Origin: Guillardia theta CCMP2712
Lineage: Eukaryota > Protista > Cryptophyta
Reading direction: 5' to 3'
Assembly (NCBI RefSeq): GCF_000315625.1
Contig: NW_005434618.1
Location: 316,429 to 380,428, forward strand
DNA length: 64,000 nucleotides
Part shown: in pieces, positions 5,427 to 44,500 of the stretch
Layout: each line of letters starts with the position of its first letter
Numbering within the stretch: the stretch's first letter is position 1
The notes under the pieces: generated by a model
What the model was told of the DNA's origin: nothing
The model's database searches: none
The model's input: the letters and a program-made list of their open reading frames with translations, nothing else
Translations under genes and position numbers: made by a program

Positions 5427-7870
5427 ATGCGGCTTGCGGCAGTTGTAGCGATCGCGTCGTCGCGCTTGCTGCTCGCTGAAGCCTTCGTGGTCTCTCCTGC
5501 TGCTAGACTATCTTCCTCCTTGTCTAGCTTCAACTCCTGCTCCTCGTCCTTCCTCCCCTCCCATCTCTCGACTGTACGACCTCAACTCTTACCGAGATCT
5601 GGATGCTCTGCAAGGATTGGCAAGGGGCTTCGGATGACCTTGGCAGCACCTGCCAAGATAGATGGACCACGATGGAAGAATGATGAAGAATATGCGTCGC
5701 TTGATGACGTCAAGATGCAAGAGGACATGAAAATGGTTGAGAAAATGGTAGATGACATCTCTGCTCTTTCCAAGAAGCTTGATCTGAAGAGTCTGGAGAA
5801 CATCGACCCATCCATCCTGGTTCAGCTCTCTAAGAAAGCCACGGATGCATCAGTGATACTCATGAATGTTGCGACGTTCGCTTCATGTGAATCCAGTGTG
5901 GATGGGACCAATGCCCAAGCCCGGGCGACGTCAGCGAAAGTTCGTGCACTCTCAGCCAAGCTGGGCCAAGCTGCTCAGCCGCTCTCGATTGCGCTCAAGC
6001 TAATCCCTGAAGACAAGGTCGAGAAGTATCTGAAGGAGCTGCCGCATGAAGAATTCTCCGTGAGACATCAACGCAAGGTAAAATTTGGAGACAAAACTGC
6101 GCAGGTTTGCTGACTTTGGCGTTCCCAGCTCCGCGATTTCACCCTCAGCCTTGAAGAAGAAAATCTGATTACTGCGCTTGGAGTTGATGGGCACAGCAGC
6201 TGGTCGCAGATGTACAATACCATCTCGTCGACTCTCACATGCCAGGTCGGGGACAAGAGCATGGGGGTCGCTCAAGCCGCCGCCCTCCTTTCATCTCCAG
6301 ACCGCTCCGAACGTCTCCAAGCCTGGAATGCCATCCAGGCCGCCTGGACGGTCCATGAGGAAGCAGCGGCGTCTACCCTCAACAGCATCATCGGCTGGAG
6401 ACTCGAGTTGAACAGGAAGAGGGCTGAGAAGGCCGCACAGCCAGTCCATTTCCTTGACACCGCCTTGCACCAGGTTGGTTTTCGCTGTACCATGAACCTT
6501 CTGACTTGTTTGCACATTCAGAACCGTATGTCGCGCAAGACCTTGGATGCGATGATGCAGGCAGTCTCGGAAGCCCAGCCTCTCGCGCAGAAGGCGTTGA
6601 AGCTTCAAGCCAAGGTGTTGGGAATCGAGTCCTTGCATCCGGCCGACCTCTTTGCACCTCCGCCACAAGGCGCCCAGTCGTCGTCACTTGCTTTGCAATA
6701 CGAGGAAGGCATCGGTAAAGTCTTGCTCTCCCTCCATCTCTCCATGTTCCCAGAGATACATTGTGTTACTTCCGGGAAGACTTGATCTTTCTGACTCGAT
6801 GGCAGATCTCATCGCAGATTGTGTTTCTTCGGTCCATCCATCCGTCGGTGAATTCGTCAAGATGATGTCGCAGAAAGAATGGATTGAAGGGAAATCGGGA
6901 GACAAGAAGGTTCGCCTTGTACTTCGCTTTCCTTGCTCGGGCTGAGAGTTGTCTGCAGGCGCCTGGAGCGTACTGTACATCCTTCGCCAAGTCGAGAAAT
7001 CCTCGCGTCTACCTGTCGTCCTACACAGGGTCCTACCAGCACGTTTCCACCCTTGCACACGAGTTGGGACATGCGTTCCACTCTTGGGTCATGAAGGACA
7101 TGGAGCGATCTGAGACCCGGTGGAGAAGTTGTTTCACTATGTGACCAACGCTGACCCTCGCTACCAGCTATCCCATGAATCTTGCGGAGACAGCTTCCAT
7201 CTTCTTCGAGACGGTTGTTGGGGATCGGCTCGTGGCCATGGCGAAGACTCCTGAGGAGAAGCTTCGCTACAGTTGGTGAGGAAGAAACATTTGAGATTTG
7301 GTCCATTCCCCTGACGCTGGACCGAATCCCTCCCTCCTCCTTCCCCAGGTACGACGCTGAGAGTGCTGGGGCGTTTCTCCTCAACATCCCAACAAGGTTC
7401 GACTTCGAGTCTGAGATTCATGCTGCCCGAGAGCAGGGTCAGAACCTCACCCCAGACTTCCTCCGGAACACGATGACCAAGGCCTGGAAGGGTCGCTATG
7501 GCGATGCCCTCAGCGAGTATGACAGCATGTTCTGGGCTTCCAAGCTTCACTTCCACATGACGGGAGTGCAATTCTACAACTTCCCCTACACCTTCGGGTA
7601 CTTGTTCGCCTTGGGAGTCTATGCACAGCAGGAGAAGCTCGGGGATGGCTTCTATCAGGCCTACGTCGATCTCCTGCGTGACACAGGAAGAATGTCGGCA
7701 GAAGAGGTTCGTCATGAGGCCATGGTGAGGGCTGGGCTGACGTGTGCGACCAGGTGGTGCAGAAGCACCTCAAGTGCAACATCGAGGAGCCGGAGTTCTG
7801 GCGAGGATCCATCAGGATCATCGAGAAGAAGATCGAGGTTTTGGAGAGCCTCGTCAACCAGGTTGCCTGA
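5427..7870 (+). CDS. Oligoendopeptidase F (peptidase M3B, PepF-like) with bipartite plastid-targeting leader
   Basis: HEXXH motif TLAHELGHAFH (~7048-7082), GAYCT, LAETASIFFE and FYNFPYTFGYLF. N-terminus is a signal peptide ending AEA|F followed by a Ser-rich transit peptide. Stop TGA at 7868-7870. Confidence 0.92.
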
Positions 7871-30024: not shown

Positions 30025-32052
<2,028 letters not shown>

Positions 32053-32342
32053 CGTGTTCAATGAGGTTCAAGTCAACCCAAGCGACTCAAGGTTTGTTTG
32101 CTCTACCGTCTGTTTTACTGTGTGTTGAGGGCCGGGAATGTTCCTTGCAGCAAGTTTCTGCCAGTCACCGTGACGGTATGCTGTTATTTCCTTATCGACA
32201 TCATCATCATCATCATCTCTTCTCCTTCTTCTCCTCTCCTCTCATCCCTTCTTTCCTCATTGCCGCACTTGTCAGTTGCTTGACCATGACCCTGCCGTTA
32301 CAAATTGTAACGATTCAGGTCAAGCATCTTGTTGGGGTCGAC

Positions 32343-35300
32343 ATGGCCGGGCATTGTAGCGACTGCGAGGTAAAAGAGCAGCAGCGATGAGAAGCTTGTT
32401 TGCGCTGATGACCATACTGATGCACATGCTTGCTCTGCTCCTCTGCATCATCGCTTGCCTTTGCTGTCTCACGCGAAAGGCAACTGCTTGTCTCTTGACA
32501 CGACATATTGCAGATCGAGCTCAGCCATGACACTGCAGACACCTCGAAATGCGTAAGACCAGTAGCTGCTTGTTGCAGCCATCTGACTTCAATCTTTCAT
32601 GCTTCGGGATGAAACGGCGCTCTTGCTTGTGCGGGAGGGACACAGCGGGTAAATATCTGTATTGTTTCAATGAGTTCATTCAGGGATCGGGTGGTTGACA
32701 TCTGTTCTTTTCAACCTTTGGTAAACAAATTGAATGCACCTTTGACGGGCCGGAATAGCGAGTGAGTATCATCTTGTAAATGCCCTCATGGAACAATCGT
32801 TAACATCGCTTTGCATTTTTTTCTGTTGCATTTATACGGCTGCTTAGAATGTAAGAAATAACTAGAAATCATAATCTCAACGATTGATTGGACTGAAATT
32901 ATTTCTTTCGATTTGTTCTGATTGGATGGCCTGTTGAGGGACTGGATAGGGAGTAAGTGACAATTCAACATGATTCCTGCTACGCGATGGGTTGAATGAC
33001 TTTTTTTGACGTTCTTGTCGTGGAAACTGTTGCTGGGCCTGGATAGCTTGTAAGTTTCATCTTGAAACTTGCAGTCAGGCATTGGACTGATATTTCGAAT
33101 TTCAAATCACTTATTTTTCACTTGGATGGGTTTGTTGAGGATAGAATGTAAGTCGCCTTCGCTTCGCTGAAGGATGCAATTGAGAGAAGATACGCTGACA
33201 TCAGTTTGGCAACCGTTTTGGTTATGCTCGGATGGACTGTTGATGGTGTTGGATAGTACGTAAGTGACAAGTCAAAAATGATTGTCTCTAAGATCTGAGA
33301 TCCTTTGGACTGACATTTGTGATGCTTCCTGGGTTGTTGCTGGATTTCTGGATTGTTGCTATTGGAGACAGCGAGTCAGTATCATATGCAAGAATGCAGT
33401 TCGATCATAAAACTGACGTTTTCCTGGATGTGGCATGTGTTGGCTGCTCTGACGAACTGACTATTGGTCTTGACAGCGAGCGGTAAGTGATGATTGGGAG
33501 AGATGCTCTCAGATCGTTGAACTGACTAGTGTTTGGCAAATTTCGATTGTTATGCTTCTTGGATCAATGCAAATCTGGTGTCTATGTAGGTTGTAAGTAT
33601 CCATGAGAAGTGAAGAAAATCAAAGATCGAGTGGAACTGACATTGTTTTTGCCTTCTCTACCTGTTTTCCTCCTGGGCTATTCACTGGGTCTGGACAGCT
33701 TGTGAGTAGCAAATACTGCAATGCCTGTCTGACACCGACTGACTGACGTTTTTATTTATCACATAACTGGATTCGGGGACTGAGCGGAATAGTTTGTGAG
33801 CGTCTTGTTGAATAAGCTCTTGTGAGAGACTGACATTGATTCTTCTCTTTCCGTTTGTCTTGCCAACCCATGCACGCACTTGAATTGGCCCATCAGTGCT
33901 GTGTAAGCGATTTCTTCATCCTGTGTCTGTCTGCAGACCTGACGTTGCTTGTGTTTGGACATGCTGTCGCACACCTTGTAGAATGTAAGTTTGCGCTCTT
34001 ATACGATCATCGGTGATTGTTCTACTATCTTGACTGATTGGCTCAGTGTGCCCATGCTCGAGGATGGTCGAAATACGACAAGGTAAACAATCGCTTTAAG
34101 GACTGACATATGAAGTGACGGCCGCTGTCAGGAGGCATGTTGCCACTGCAAGACACGACTAGTAGAGAAGAGGGAGGAAGAGCAGCGCAAGCTGAAAGAG
34201 CAGGAGGAGCAGCGCAAGCTGAAAGAGCAGGAGGAGCAGCGCAAGCTGAAAGAGCAGGAGGAGCAGCGCAAGCTGAAAGAGCAGGAGGAGCAGCGCAAGC
34301 TGAAAGAGCAGGAGGAGCAGCGCAAGCTGAAAGAGCAGGAGGAGCAGCGCAAGCTGAAAGAGCAGGAGGAGCAGCGCAAGCTGAAAGAGCAGGAGGAGCA
34401 GCGCAAGCTGAAAGAGCAGGAGGAGCAGCGCAAGCTGAAAGAGCAGGAGGAGCAGCGCAAGCTGAAAGAGCAGGAGGAGCAGCGCAAGCTGAAGGAGCAG
34501 GAGGAGCAGCGCAAGCTGAAGGATCTGTTGGCGATGGAATACCCCAAGCTAGAGCATGTGGAGTTGAATCTTGCTGTTGATCGAGCCATCAGAATTCAAG
34601 AAAGCACGGACAGGTCGAAGTCTGGCCTGTACTTCATCTTCAAATGCATGGTGAAGGTTGATAACGTGCAAAGAAAAGGGATACTGAAAGCAGCAAAAGA
34701 TAAAACAAGCGAGGCAAAGCTGCGTCGTGAACTTTTGTTCTACACCAAGATCCATAGGGACAGCAATGCACAAAATTATATCGTCAAGGATATATACATG
34801 GAGGAGAAATGGAGTGTGGACGGTTGCTGTGGTTTTCTTGCCATAGTTACAGAGCGAGCAAAGCAATCTCTTGCAGACTGGATTGCTGAGACTGATTTTG
34901 AAACACGTCAAGATCACAAACTGGGGATCTGCCGGCAGCTGGGGAGAGTTGTTTCTTACCTACACAAGCAAAATCTGGTATGGCTTGCAGTGAAGCCTAC
35001 TAACTTTCTCATGTTCAAAAACCACAAGATCAAGGCTGTAGACTTTGATTCTGCAGATATGGTCGGGGCTAATGTGACCCGACGGAGTTTTGCATACAGC
35101 GCACCAGAACTGATGTTGAGAGACTCTGTTGCAGCTTCTTTCCTGATGGACGCTTGGTCCTTGGGAATGACCATCTTCGAAGTTTTTACAGCTAGAAGCC
35201 TCTGCGCCTTGTTGGGACTGAGCAATGAGGATGACGTAGTACGGTTCTGGAACAACGATGGGAGTGAAAGACTACTACAAGAGAAAGCAGGAGAGGTGTT

Positions 35301-36655
35301 GTCAAGCTCCAGTACTGACACGAGCCTGAATCATTTACTCTTCGGAAGAGACGGAGTCGGTGGCCTGCTGAGGGTGCAGACTTGCAGACGAAGCTCCGTG
35401 CTGCAGAGCATGCAAGATCGATCCCTCTTCACGGACCAAGAAACGGTCGTAGGGATTCACGCCCAGCTGAAAAATATACAACAGACTCTGGAACAAATCA
35501 AGGGTCAAGTCAGCCTCCTGCATCCTCTCATCTGCGAGGGGCTTGACGGCATCATCGCTCAGGCTGCAACCAACGACAGAGTGCAGGAACAGTTGAAGAG
35601 GCTGAGCATCAGCCTGCAGCAGATACCCGACGTGACCAACGACCGGATTGACTCTGACGACATTCGGAGCTATCTCAAGGAGATCTACAAGGCGGTAAAG
35701 GCTTGTTCCACGACATCCTCAGGCAACTCCTCCTTCTGTCTAGAAGACGTCAGTCGCACTCTCAAAGAAGCTCTTGCGCACTGTCAGAACGCGCGCAGCA
35801 GAGAGGAGAAGGAGATGCTCAGCAAGGTGCTCGAGCAGACTGCAGCCATGAAGTCTCAGCTGGACAGGGTTGAGAATCACATGACTGACATCAGATCAAA
35901 CCTCAAGAGGGCAGTCGCGACTAGTCGGTCAGCGGTGGCCTCATTGAATGAGCTCTGTCTGGCAGAGTCTCGTGACAGGTTGGCTCCGTACTTTGTCTGG
36001 ATCTACCCAGCTGAGCGCAAGAAAAGCCTGTTGAGCCGATTGAACCCGGAGAACTGGGTCTACCAAAGAGTTCACATCCGATTCATCTGTCCTGTCAGTC
36101 TACGGATCTGCGAGCAAGGGTTTCAAACTGTGGAGATGAAGAGCTGGTTCAAGCGAGCGCTCCCCTATCTCAAGGCTGCCTTGCTCGTCCTGGAGATCGC
36201 TCTCAACGGCGCTGCTGGCAGCATTGGCCTGCCATGCCCGGCCCTCGGAGGTCAGATACCCCGAGAGACGCGCGAGCTGGAAGCGGTGAAGGCTCTCAGC
36301 GCCTTCGTGACAGAGGTGGCGGTGAAAGAGCAAGTGGACCTGGAACCCATCGAGAGCTATCTGAGGGGTCGGGGAGGAGGGCAGGGGCTGTTGGAGGCGA
36401 GTCGTCGTAGCCTGAGAAGCAGCAACAGAGTTGTGGCAGAGCTGATGGAAACTATTGACAGGTGAAAGGCGCTGTCTGCGATGAAGCTTGTTCTAACAGC
36501 ATGGCAGGGGATGGGTGGACAAGACCGGGCTCAAGTTCGTGACTGCCGAGGATGGATCTGTGGAGTGGGTACATCCGTCGGTAGCAGAGAACTTCAGGAG
36601 AGACGGAAGGAGGATGTTCTCTCCGCTACAAGCTCCTTCCGTAGCTCCGCCTTGA
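32343..36655 (+). CDS. RING-like Cys domain (micro-exon encoded) + coiled-coil repeat + protein-kinase-like (pseudokinase) domain + coiled coil + Roco/TORNADO1-like C-terminal region
   Basis: Proposed exons: 32343-32369, 32514-32552, 14 micro-exons (32646-33984), 34047-34082, 34132-36461 and 36508-36655. All join in frame with ORF 34528-36465. Kinase motifs GILK, LVWLAVKPTNF, AVDFD, YSAPE and DAWSLG. Confidence 0.8.
32646..33984 (+). other. Array of 14 phase-0 micro-exons (3 or 6 nt)
   Basis: Each is AG|exon|GTRAG-like: CGG 32646-48, CGA 32759-61, AAT 32848-50, GGA 32950-52, CTT 33047-49, AAT 33145-47, TAC 33257-59, CGA 33372-74, CGAGCG 33477-82, GTT 33590-92, CTT 33699-701, TTT 33793-95, TGCTGT 33897-902, AAT 33982-84. 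Confidence 0.88.
34174..34521 (+). repeat. Coding 27-bp tandem repeat x13 encoding (EEQRKLKEQ)n
   Basis: Unit GAGCAGCGCAAGCTGAAAGAGCAGGAG, almost perfect, in frame with the kinase ORF. Confidence 0.97.
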
Positions 36656-37570
36656 TCGACATCTCGATCTTGAGCTCCTCCTTGTTGCAGCTGCTCGCCA
36701 TCAACGCTGCATTCGCGTTCCTGCTTCTGCTGTTCTCGTCCTTCATCCCTCTGAGGCAGCCCGATCTGCCCTATCACGGCCCCCTGCAGAATTCCATGAT
36801 AACCCGCTTTCACACGGCAGCCCGTGTGAAAGCTTAGTGAGATAGAGAAAAGGTTATTGAAACTCCTTGCCGAGCAACTGATATTGAAACACACGTCATC
36901 AAGATGATAACGTAGCTTGCAACCGTCGAACACCGTTCAACGGTTGCAAGCTCTTCAAGCTCTGAAACCTACCTGTGAGCTCCAACTTGACCGTCCTGTC
37001 AAAGACCTTCCCCACCCTCCGGGTCAGAGTTTCTTGATGTGCTTTTGCTTGCCGCTCAAGGTTGTTCCAGGGACACTGCGAAACGACAGTGCAAGCCCTG
37101 CACCAACTTGCAACGCACCTCCTCCTCATCCTCCCGCCTGTCTCCGCACCAGGGCCTCCGCCGTGGAGTCTATGCACACCAGCCCACTGCAAGTAAAGCC
37201 ATTAGGTTATGAGCTGAAGTCCAGCTGACTCATTGAGTCACTCAATGCAGCTTGTCAAAGGTTGCCAAAGCGCAACACTGAAACAAAGTTAAGCCAAGTT
37301 TACTTCCGAAGATACGGTCAGGCTGCTTGGCATCCCAGTCACAGGGTTTTAAATTGAGTCAAGTGTAAGTTGGGCCCGGCCCCGGCCCGACGGCCCGACA
37401 CCCGGCCGGGTCGAGTCACTGAGTCAAGTTCAAAGACTCGCACCGTGGCACTGAGAGCACAGTGACCGCCGTCCGATCCCCGGGCCCCGGCCCGGGACGG
37501 TAACCAGCCTCGGAACGTTACAAGCCGTTGTACCTTTCTTTCCGTTGATACCAACCGTTGCGTTTTTGAA

Positions 37571-38022
37571 GCTCTCTTCCATGCTCAAGCTTCTCCTCGC
37601 TCTCTTCCATGCACGAGCTTCTCCTCGCTCTCTTCCATGCACGAGCTTCTCCTCGCTCTCTTCCATGCTCAAGCTTCTCCTCGCTCTCTTCCATGCACAA
37701 GCTTCTCCTCGCTCTCTTCCATGCACAAGCTTCTCCTCGCTCTCTTCCATGCACAAGCTTCTCCTCGCTCTCTTCCATGCACAAGCTTCTCCTCGCTCTC
37801 TTCCATGCACAAGCTTCTCCTCGCTCTCTTCCATGCTCAAGCTTCTCCTCGCTCTCTTCCATGCACAAGCTTCTCCTCGCTCTCTTCCATGCACAAGCTT
37901 CTCCTCGCTCTCTTCCACGCACAAGCTTCTCCTCGCTCTCTTCCATGCACAAGCTTCTCCTCGCTCTCTTCCACGCACAAGCTTCTCCTCGCTCTCTTCC
38001 ATGCACAAGCTTCTCCTCGCTC
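37571..38022. repeat. 28-bp minisatellite, ~16 copies
   Basis: Unit GCTCTCTTCCATGCACAAGCTTCTCCTC with single-base variants and no spacers. Confidence 0.97.
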
Positions 38023-38320
38023 GATTGTCTCGAGTATTTCATGAAATCTGCGTCAGCCTGATATTTCTTTGCTTCAGATGAAAGTTGCTCTTTCCGACGT
38101 GACCAACGAAAGTTCACATGAAGTTCCTGCACAGACAGGTTCGAATACTTCCTCTGACTCCGATTGGTTTCCTCTATTGCTCAACTCATTTCTTGCTCAA
38201 AAGTGATTGTTGATGGCCTTTTTGAAAGGTGCAAAACATAGCGAGCTGAAGACAACCACCAAGTCATCGAAGACGAGAGTATCTAACCCAATAATCTCAA
38301 AAGAAGTAGTTGTTGGTCAG

Positions 38321-40499: not shown

Positions 40500-44500
<4,001 letters not shown>

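Follow-up and report, generated by a model that had tools for sequence, protein, structure and literature searches.

How can a spliceosome handle an exon that is shorter than its own footprint? The question is an open one, and it has been studied almost exclusively in animal neurons. Here, we describe a locus of the cryptophyte Guillardia theta CCMP2712 at which the question arises for exons of a single codon. The window analysed is a stretch of 64,000 nucleotides (nt) of contig NW_005434618.1 (positions 316,429 to 380,428 of the forward strand), and positions 32343-36700 on its plus strand are a protein-kinase gene in which a tandem array of 14 candidate micro-exons encodes a loop of an N-terminal eight-cysteine domain. 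The reading that we favor, with a probability of roughly 0.6, is that the array is made of autonomous units, each defined across its own intron, in which a distant branch site is followed by a late choice of the acceptor AG and the spacer between the two provides room for the U2 and U1 small nuclear ribonucleoproteins (snRNPs).

The array occupies positions 32553-33984 of the plus strand. It comprises 14 candidate micro-exon sites, spaced 82-115 nt apart, at which a YAG acceptor is followed by 3 nt (12 sites) or 6 nt (two sites) and then by a strong donor. The donors are GTAAGT in six cases and GTGAGT, GTAAGA, GTAAGC, GTGAGC, GTCAGT or GTAAAT in the rest. Among the acceptors, GGATAG occurs four times, GGAATAG twice and GGACAG once, the three forms on which an initial annotation of this DNA had seen the acceptors converge, and GGGACACAG and GGAGACAG occur as well. 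The pattern AG-N3/N6-GTRAGY is found 12 times in the 1.3-kilobase (kb) array as against about 24 times in shuffles of the entire 64-kb window (both strands), and a scan of the window for this pattern revealed no further cluster; the array is not a product of chance. An apparent second array at 41793-41902 is a coincidence of purine-rich low-complexity sequence. The introns that precede the micro-exons are 79-112 nt long, in agreement with the range and the coordinates given in the initial annotation. The units are as follows, with distances given from the putative branch A to the acceptor.

32553-32648, plus strand: unit 1, a 93-nt intron with CTGAC at 32583-32587 (59 nt), then micro-exon CGG (32646-32648).
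32649-32761, plus strand: unit 2, a 110-nt intron with TTGAC (A at 32698, 60 nt) and a second TTGAC at 13 nt, then micro-exon CGA.
32762-32850, plus strand: unit 3, an 86-nt intron with TTAAC (A at 32803, 44 nt) and no internal AG, then micro-exon AAT.
32851-32952, plus strand: unit 4, a 99-nt intron with GACTGAA (A at 32896, 53 nt), then micro-exon GGA.
32953-33049, plus strand: unit 5, a 94-nt intron with ATGAC at 47 nt or TTGAC at 37 nt, then micro-exon CTT.
33050-33147, plus strand: unit 6, a 95-nt intron with CTGAT (A at 33090, 54 nt), then micro-exon AAT.
33148-33259, plus strand: unit 7, a 109-nt intron with CTGAC at 33195-33199 (58 nt) and TTGAT at 13 nt, then micro-exon TAC.
33260-33374, plus strand: unit 8, a 112-nt intron with CTGAC at 33310-33314 (58 nt), then micro-exon CGA.
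33375-33482, plus strand: unit 9, a 102-nt intron with CTGAC at 33413-33417 (60 nt) and further CTGAC motifs at 24 and 16 nt, then the 6-nt micro-exon CGAGCG.
33483-33592, plus strand: unit 10, a 107-nt intron with CTGAC at 33522-33526 (64 nt), then micro-exon GTT.
33593-33701, plus strand: unit 11, a 106-nt intron with CTGAC at 33637-33641 (58 nt), then micro-exon CTT.
33702-33795, plus strand: unit 12, a 91-nt intron with CTGAC at 33729-33733 (60 nt) and two more at 50 and 46 nt, then micro-exon TTT.
33796-33902, plus strand: unit 13, a 101-nt intron with CTGAC at 33830-33834 (63 nt), then the 6-nt micro-exon TGCTGT (conserved Cys-Cys), the positional homologue of the RNA-verified exon at 5925-5930 of the paralogous locus L003 (see below).
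33903-33984, plus strand: unit 14, a 79-nt intron with CTGAC at 33939-33943 (39 nt), then micro-exon AAT (conserved Asn), the homologue of L003 5931-6013.

Are such units exons at all? The RNA evidence comes from a paralogue. The nearest homologue of the encoded protein, and the only close one found, is the transcript-derived protein P0001 (55% identity), which shares a 90% cluster with GUITHDRAFT_142065 of the same strain and with two MMETSP transcripts. The material available for this paralogue consists of a genomic locus (L003, JH993024.1) and two transcript contigs from assemblies (L001 and L004). When L001 is placed on L003, it contains 11 micro-exons, namely GCG, GTG, ATT and CAT, then (after an 87-nt exon) CCT, TAT, TTT, TTC, TAT, TGCTGT and AAT, followed by a 36-nt exon. 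An exhaustive count showed that exactly one chain of GT-AG introns explains L001, with exons of any length and introns of 30-399 nt allowed. TGCTGT, AAT, the 36-nt exon and an exon ending in ...TCGAAATG[C/T] have positional homologues in both paralogues, and a GT donor and a YAG acceptor flank all 14 window units and all 11 transcript-verified units. Single-codon exons are really spliced in this gene family, at homologous positions. The second contig, L004 (positions 1-263 against L003:5781-6123), is partly spliced: it lacks the intron between TGCTGT and AAT but still has the introns on both sides. An intron between two micro-exons can thus be removed alone, and removal does not strictly proceed from 5' to 3'.

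The encoded protein provides the second line of evidence. A single open frame of 827 codons runs from the ATG at 32343 through exon 2, the 14 micro-exons, a 36-nt exon and a large exon, and continues past the intron at 36462-36507. Its N-terminus forms an eight-cysteine module, CxxC-x13-C-loop-CCNC-x13-CxxC, which is presumably zinc-binding. The Cys-rich N-terminus matched no family in a Pfam search, but the homologous N-terminus, when compared with 1.8 billion representative proteins, recovered the eight-cysteine module in three others. The CC and the N are invariant in four of five copies of the module, and the loop in the homologues is 2-15 residues long as first aligned. The window micro-exons TGCTGT and AAT encode precisely this CC and N. 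As read from the sequence, then, the array codes for two essential positions and for a loop that tolerates differences in length. If every micro-exon is included, the window loop comes to 13 residues, the same as in protein P0004.

The module is also present in P0001. Two of the proteins found carry it, in the form CxxC-x13-C-loop-CCNCAKxxGW...CxxCK, in two copies each: P0003, from an intronless open reading frame (ORF; L002:2749-4407) on a metagenome scaffold of the ENA, and P0004, a 290-residue protein from a 1275-nt contig.

Inclusion in mRNA is documented by the transcript for the 11 paralogue micro-exons, and in the window it is backed by the homology of CC, N and the 36-nt exon. Perhaps only the last two or three window micro-exons are used, and the upstream units are pseudo-exons within one long intron, or exons of a minor isoform. 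The transcript evidence does come from the paralogue and none of it from the window locus, the protein homology constrains CC, N and perhaps an F only, and homologues with loops of 2 and 6 residues exist. It is difficult to see, however, why skipped decoys would have kept a YAG, almost always a G at donor position +5 (+5G), a length divisible by three, the absence of stop codons and an AG-free tail despite their divergence. Considering also that all 11 paralogue micro-exons are in the transcript and that the full-length loop equals that of P0004, we regard skipping of the upstream units as very unlikely.

What distinguishes the introns in front of these exons from ordinary ones? The remaining parts of the kinase gene, which include its ordinary introns, are as follows.

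32343-32369, plus strand: coding part of exon 1, with the ATG and the first CxxC of the Cys-rich domain; the position of the intron after CxxC-x is common to the paralogue isoform P0127.
32370-32513, plus strand: ordinary intron of 144 nt before the 39-nt exon, with a TTGAC branch-like motif 15 nt from the acceptor.
32514-32552, plus strand: exon 2, 39 nt, IELSHDTADTSKC, giving the CxxC-x13-C pattern as in P0004; the DNA at its end is nearly the same as at the end of paralogue exon 1.
33985-34046, plus strand: ordinary intron of 62 nt, with TTGAC at 13 nt and CTGAT at 9 nt; the TTGAC at 13 nt is kept in the paralogue intron L003 6014-6087.
34047-34082, plus strand: 36-nt exon, CAHARGWSKYDK, homologous to the RNA-verified 36-nt exon L003 6088-6123.
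34083-34131, plus strand: ordinary intron of 49 nt, with CTGAC at 25 nt or GTGAC at about 12 nt.
34132-36461, plus strand: large exon, with the rest of the Cys domain, a 27-nt repeat of 12.8 copies, the protein-kinase domain and a long C-terminal region.
36462-36507, plus strand: ordinary intron of 46 nt, with CTAAC at 11 nt; the C-terminus of P0001 confirms the junction.

In the array introns, the distal CTGAC-like motif lies at a median of 58 nt from the acceptor. The seven CTGAC motifs that the initial annotation had placed about 57-63 nt before the AG are all exactly where it put them, with the branch A 58-64 nt from the 3' splice site. The ordinary introns have motifs of the CTRAC/TTGAC type 9-25 nt from the acceptor, close to the 10-25 nt given there, and the intron at 33985-34046 does return to 62 nt and a proximal motif. 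The ordinary introns of the gene measure 46, 49 and 62 nt, and the first one 144 nt, as compared with the roughly 45-60 nt that had been proposed for ordinary microsatellite-free introns. The RNA-verified introns of the paralogue show the same division, with motifs at 31-61 nt before micro-exons (in one intron, at 49 or 152 nt) and at 10, 13, 16 and 11 nt before ordinary exons. The intron with the two candidate motifs, L003:5727-5924, is 198 nt long, precedes TGCTGT, is extremely T-rich and has no AG over its last 159 nt.

The two classes were compared formally using 25 micro-exon introns and 8 homology- or RNA-anchored ordinary introns from the window and the RNA-verified paralogue. Ordinary introns obtained by joining ORFs across the window proved too noisy in this GC-rich sequence and were not used as controls; the few that look reliable have branch-like motifs at 8-20 nt. 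One measure makes no use of branch motifs, namely how far upstream of the acceptor the first AG other than GAG lies; its median is 73 nt in micro-exon introns versus 17 nt in ordinary introns (Mann-Whitney p = 4e-5). Under the most conservative rule, in which the motif nearest the acceptor is always taken, the values are 45 and 14 nt (p = 6e-4). These results support the existence of two intron classes, the class following the size of the next exon. The donors differ as well: of those downstream of micro-exons, 24 of 25 have +5G, as compared with 2 of 8 downstream of ordinary exons (Fisher p = 2e-4), as would fit a 3-nt coding exon that cannot add exon-side pairing to U1.

The stretch between the distal motif and the acceptor has a composition of its own. 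It was described initially as T/G-rich, and it does contain 39% T and 25% G; to this can be added that the pyrimidines lie on the branch side (49% T in the first 10 nt after branch A) and the G on the acceptor side (38% G in the last 10 nt before the acceptor AG). It is also depleted of AG. The window spacers contain 7 AG dinucleotides in 735 nt versus 30.6 expected, with none of 5000 shuffles as low, and the verified micro-exon introns of the paralogue have 1 versus 18.8 expected in their tails. Five of the seven are GAG, the weakest acceptor type, no more than 11 nt from the real YAG, and the other two lie 4-6 nt after branch A, too near for use. In the 5' parts of the array introns, AG makes up 6.6% of dinucleotide positions, and most units have an AG 5-17 nt upstream of the distal motif, such that the AG-free zone starts at the motif. 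The T/G-rich spacers were also considered as exons of 55 nt in their own right, a possibility that fails because no AG that could serve as their acceptor follows the branch motif.

Does branching occur at the distal motif? On the sequence evidence we would say yes, given the avoidance of AG behind it, the adjoining T-rich tract, its conservation between paralogues and the motif-free AG distance. The conservation is seen best in unit 14 and its homologue L003 5931-6013, in which CTGAC and a downstream TTGCTTG are kept at 39 and 43 nt, while in the following ordinary intron TTGAC stands at 13 nt in both paralogues; homologous introns are otherwise poorly alignable. The contrary view, that branching takes place at cryptic proximal sites and that the distal CTGAC has no role, being perhaps left over from a founder intron, can point to look-alikes in three of the 14 window introns (at 13, 13 and 16/24 nt) and to the fact that branch sites can be degenerate. 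Since the AG-free zone and the T-rich tract both begin at the distal motif, which the paralogues conserve, and the other 11 introns are devoid of a proximal motif, we give this view almost no credence. The distance from the donor to the distal motif is 30-53 nt (mean 42), which is about the entire upstream part of an ordinary intron. An array intron looks, in its sequence, like an ordinary intron with about 45 extra nt inserted between the branch site and the acceptor.

The pathway that these features support best is the following. Each array intron would be recognized alone, by intron definition, with a near-consensus +5G donor. U2 would bind the CTGAC-type branch site, whose distance from the donor (about 42 nt) is like that in ordinary short introns, with the T-rich tract directly behind it. 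The extra spacer would lengthen the stretch from branch A to the acceptor from about 13 to about 58 nt, and given this distance the acceptor would probably be selected late, as the first usable AG downstream. Because the first usable AG would be chosen, the spacer would have been kept free of AG, apart from the weak GAGs near the acceptor and the AGs near branch A. The initial annotation had spoken of a dedicated splicing code for micro-exons; this was an overstatement, since what is seen agrees with an ordinary mechanism in which the first AG beyond a distant branch point is selected late.

Why should the spacer be there in the first place? It was proposed initially that it stands in for the missing exon length, so that U2 and the downstream U1 can both bind. 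Like a normal exon, the spacer would then provide room between the branch region with its bound U2 and the next intron's donor with its bound U1. Without it, a 3-nt exon and a branch distance of 13 nt would leave about 16 nt between the branch site and the next donor, which would fall within the stretch covered by the U2 snRNP and its partners. Substitution for exon length predicts the match that is actually observed: branch A and the next donor are 42-69 nt apart across micro-exons versus 45-54 nt across the ordinary exons of 36 and 39 nt, and the smallest value in the paralogue is about 34 nt. The measured part of the proposal is supported; its steric part, which parallels a hypothesis for animal neural micro-exons, would be the most likely reason for the spacer. 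This steric hypothesis is directly testable, as it predicts that the next donor should not come closer than about 35-45 nt to the branch site.

Several points weigh against the reading that we favor. The branch points in these introns are predictions from sequence, the 8 ordinary controls are a small set, and mixed use of branch sites is possible in the three introns with proximal look-alikes. The loop of the paralogue is organised differently, with 4 micro-exons, the 87-nt exon and then 7 micro-exons, so that for the first 11 window micro-exons it is the splice signals that argue for inclusion. The one RNA run filed under the species name gave no reads on 32000-34174 (60-nt reads, 6% of the run sampled), which is too thin to serve as a test, and an exact search for the window's 36-nt exon in metagenome and transcript contigs gave no matches. 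A search for related loci with the kinase alignment likewise confirmed no relative. Finally, one RNA-verified paralogue micro-exon intron works with only about 31 nt, which implies that a steric minimum, if any, lies below the typical 58 nt and that the typical value may be partly inherited.

Could inheritance alone explain the spacing? A founder intron with a distant branch site would have passed on its spacer of about 58 nt through unit duplication, with no need for it. Both halves of the units show a weak but significant similarity (z about 5-6 versus shuffles, with only one pair above the shuffle maximum), and short repeat blocks cover the acceptor, the codon and the donor, although the codon itself differs. 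The array thus grew long ago by the duplication of cassettes consisting of an intron plus a codon, and it is paralogous to that of GUITHDRAFT_142065; the different numbers of cassettes in the two genes (14 in one run versus 4 + 7 around the 87-nt exon) indicate that such arrays expand and contract. Together with the short-spaced paralogue intron, these facts speak for inheritance. On the other hand, signals, lengths in multiples of three and the AG-free zone were kept while the rest of the units diverged almost to random, which suggests that the architecture has been under selection and does not merely reflect recent copying. Not one of the 25 micro-exon introns has collapsed to 10-16 nt, the interleaved ordinary introns of the same genes stayed at that distance, and an AG-free zone requires continuous selection. 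We therefore consider inheritance by itself an unlikely explanation.

A second possibility is that a dedicated protein recruits the spliceosome through an intronic enhancer at the G/T-rich end of the spacer (TGGA/TGGAT, GGAYAG), the length merely accommodating it. Such an element would serve exons that are too short for exonic enhancers, and it would be analogous to the intronic UGC enhancer of animal micro-exons. Of the tails, 9 of 14 in the window and 8 of 11 in the paralogue contain TGGA, versus 2-3 expected from mononucleotide shuffles, and the motif is still enriched about twofold in both loci under dinucleotide-preserving shuffles (P = 0.016 in the window and 0.006 in the paralogue). However, most of the enrichment vanishes once the dinucleotide content, including AG avoidance, is preserved, GGAT and TGGAT are then not significant in the paralogue, and several verified micro-exon introns have pyrimidine-rich tails that lack the motif; common ancestry could account for what enrichment remains. 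TGC, counted in the last 30 nt, occurs 18 times versus 12.6 expected (P = 0.07), so that UGC is not significantly enriched. Much of what makes the acceptors purine-rich is a by-product of G-rich sequence that has to avoid AG. Of the factor sites suggested in the initial annotation, the motif check thus leaves the twofold enrichment of TGGA, a weak hint of a possible dedicated factor site at the spacer end, and we think it improbable that a factor-dependent code is the principal explanation.

If the room-making spacer and such a factor acted together, a more ambitious picture could be drawn, which we put forward tentatively and with considerable doubt. Cryptophytes might possess a mode of splicing that makes single-codon exons constitutive, by means of a branch ruler of about 58 nt, a U-tract adjacent to the branch point, a UGGA element with a lineage-specific factor, and a +5G donor. 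Cassettes of 100 nt could then allow the insertion, deletion or combinatorial skipping of single residues in protein loops.

Other classes of element were also considered for this locus. In some yeast introns, a hairpin shortens the distance between branch site and acceptor. No shared helix was found among the 14 array introns, which fold no better than their shuffles (z-scores around 0, with 13 between -0.9 and +2.1 and one at -2.7), and an effective shortening by hairpins is thereby ruled out. A host gene for small nucleolar RNAs is ruled out by the absence of any Rfam match at E <= 1 in 32000-34300 and by in-frame exons that encode conserved residues. Mobile introns of the introner type do not fit, as the unit profile matches only the array within the 64 kb, there are no terminal inverted repeats, and the units are highly diverged. 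Recursive splice sites, which are exons of zero nt, are excluded by the 3 or 6 nt between the two sites, retained in the paralogue transcript.

The consequences for gene annotation are illustrated by the paralogue. Its public model, P0125 (745 residues), starts inside the array (L003:6001-6087), where it places a spurious ATG exon of 3 nt; absent from it are the genuine first exon, the 87-nt exon and every one of the 11 micro-exons present in L001. Gene finders will systematically lose N-termini of this kind. The paralogue also has an apparent GC-AG intron at L003:4586-4675 (CAG/GCAAGA...TCTAG/G), which is retained in L001 and, judging from its protein, removed in isoform P0127; it has the same position as the first intron of the window gene, 32370-32513.

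The surroundings of the array hold a few further features. Between the Cys domain and the kinase domain, a tandem repeat at 34175-34520 (27 nt x 12.8 copies, 99% matches) encodes (EEQRKLKEQ)n, and the paralogue linker at this position is non-repetitive and rich in K, E and Q. A divergent gene on the minus strand, 30946-32061, starts about 300 nt upstream of the kinase gene and encodes a signal peptide and calcium-binding EGF domains. Downstream, between the kinase gene and a Sel1-repeat gene, lies a long coding-like tandem repeat (37430-38130, both strands) with units of about 29 codons, EESEEKLVHGRERGEACAWKRARRSL on the minus strand. A search with a Sel1 protein of the window brought up mostly repeats of bacterial type; the best named eukaryotic match, covering 86% of the query, came from the cryptophyte Baffinella frigidus.

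How does the array relate to systems already known? Animal micro-exons combine a long distance from branch point (BP) to AG with a strong 5' splice site, for which steric relief has been hypothesized; in those of vertebrate neurons the median branch distance is 45 versus 34 nt, the region from BP to 3' splice site (3'ss) is unpaired and splicing is sensitive to position +5; and animal micro-exons are 3-27 nt long, solitary, flanked by long introns and tissue-regulated, and they depend on UGC motifs and the eMIC domain of SRRM3/4 (PMC12871342; bioRxiv 10.1101/2024.09.17.613571). The array resembles them in its very short candidate exons, the extended BP-to-3'ss distance, the strong downstream 5' splice site and an accessible, unpaired region from BP to 3'ss. 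It differs in that the shift is about fourfold (58 versus 13 nt), nearly all exons are exactly 3 nt long and they occur in tandem runs of up to 14, and also in its flanking introns of about 100 nt, its intron-definition genome, its occurrence in a cryptophyte and the lack of significant UGC enrichment. The array may therefore work in a similar way to the SRRM-regulated animal programme, by analogy, without being assigned to it as a member.

In mammals, introns with distant branch points have AG-exclusion zones, and the first AG is chosen by scanning; such introns are scattered and linked to alternative splicing. The array introns share with them the AG-free stretch from branch to acceptor, the pyrimidine tract on the branch side, and the restriction of tolerated AGs to weak GAGs or to positions near the branch. 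Here, however, the arrangement is tied systematically to one class of exon and to a narrow range of distances. The micro-exon genes (MEGs) of schistosomes have exons of 6-36 nt and long introns, and encode secreted proteins that are diversified by exon skipping; exons of a single codon, or short and stereotyped introns whose branch sites are distant, are not known from them. As in MEGs, tandem symmetric micro-exons encode part of a protein, such that skipping preserves the frame. With recursive splice sites the array shares an acceptor that is followed almost at once by a strong donor, but in the paralogue the 3 or 6 nt are kept in the mRNA, and the introns are short, so that there is no stepwise removal of a long intron.

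A full-text search of the literature brought up neither a paper on micro-exons in Guillardia or cryptophytes nor an account of single-codon exons in tandem. The locus and its RNA-verified paralogue provide 25 natural test cases within one gene family, in which the exon is minimal (mostly one codon) and the introns are short and seemingly autonomous. The features that would compensate for the missing exon length, namely the fourfold branch distance, the AG-free zone and the near-constant +5G, are more extreme and more uniform here than in animals. The principle of a long BP-AG distance, a strong donor and steric relief has already been published for animals, and what is apparently new is its extreme, apparently constitutive, tandem form in a distant eukaryote.

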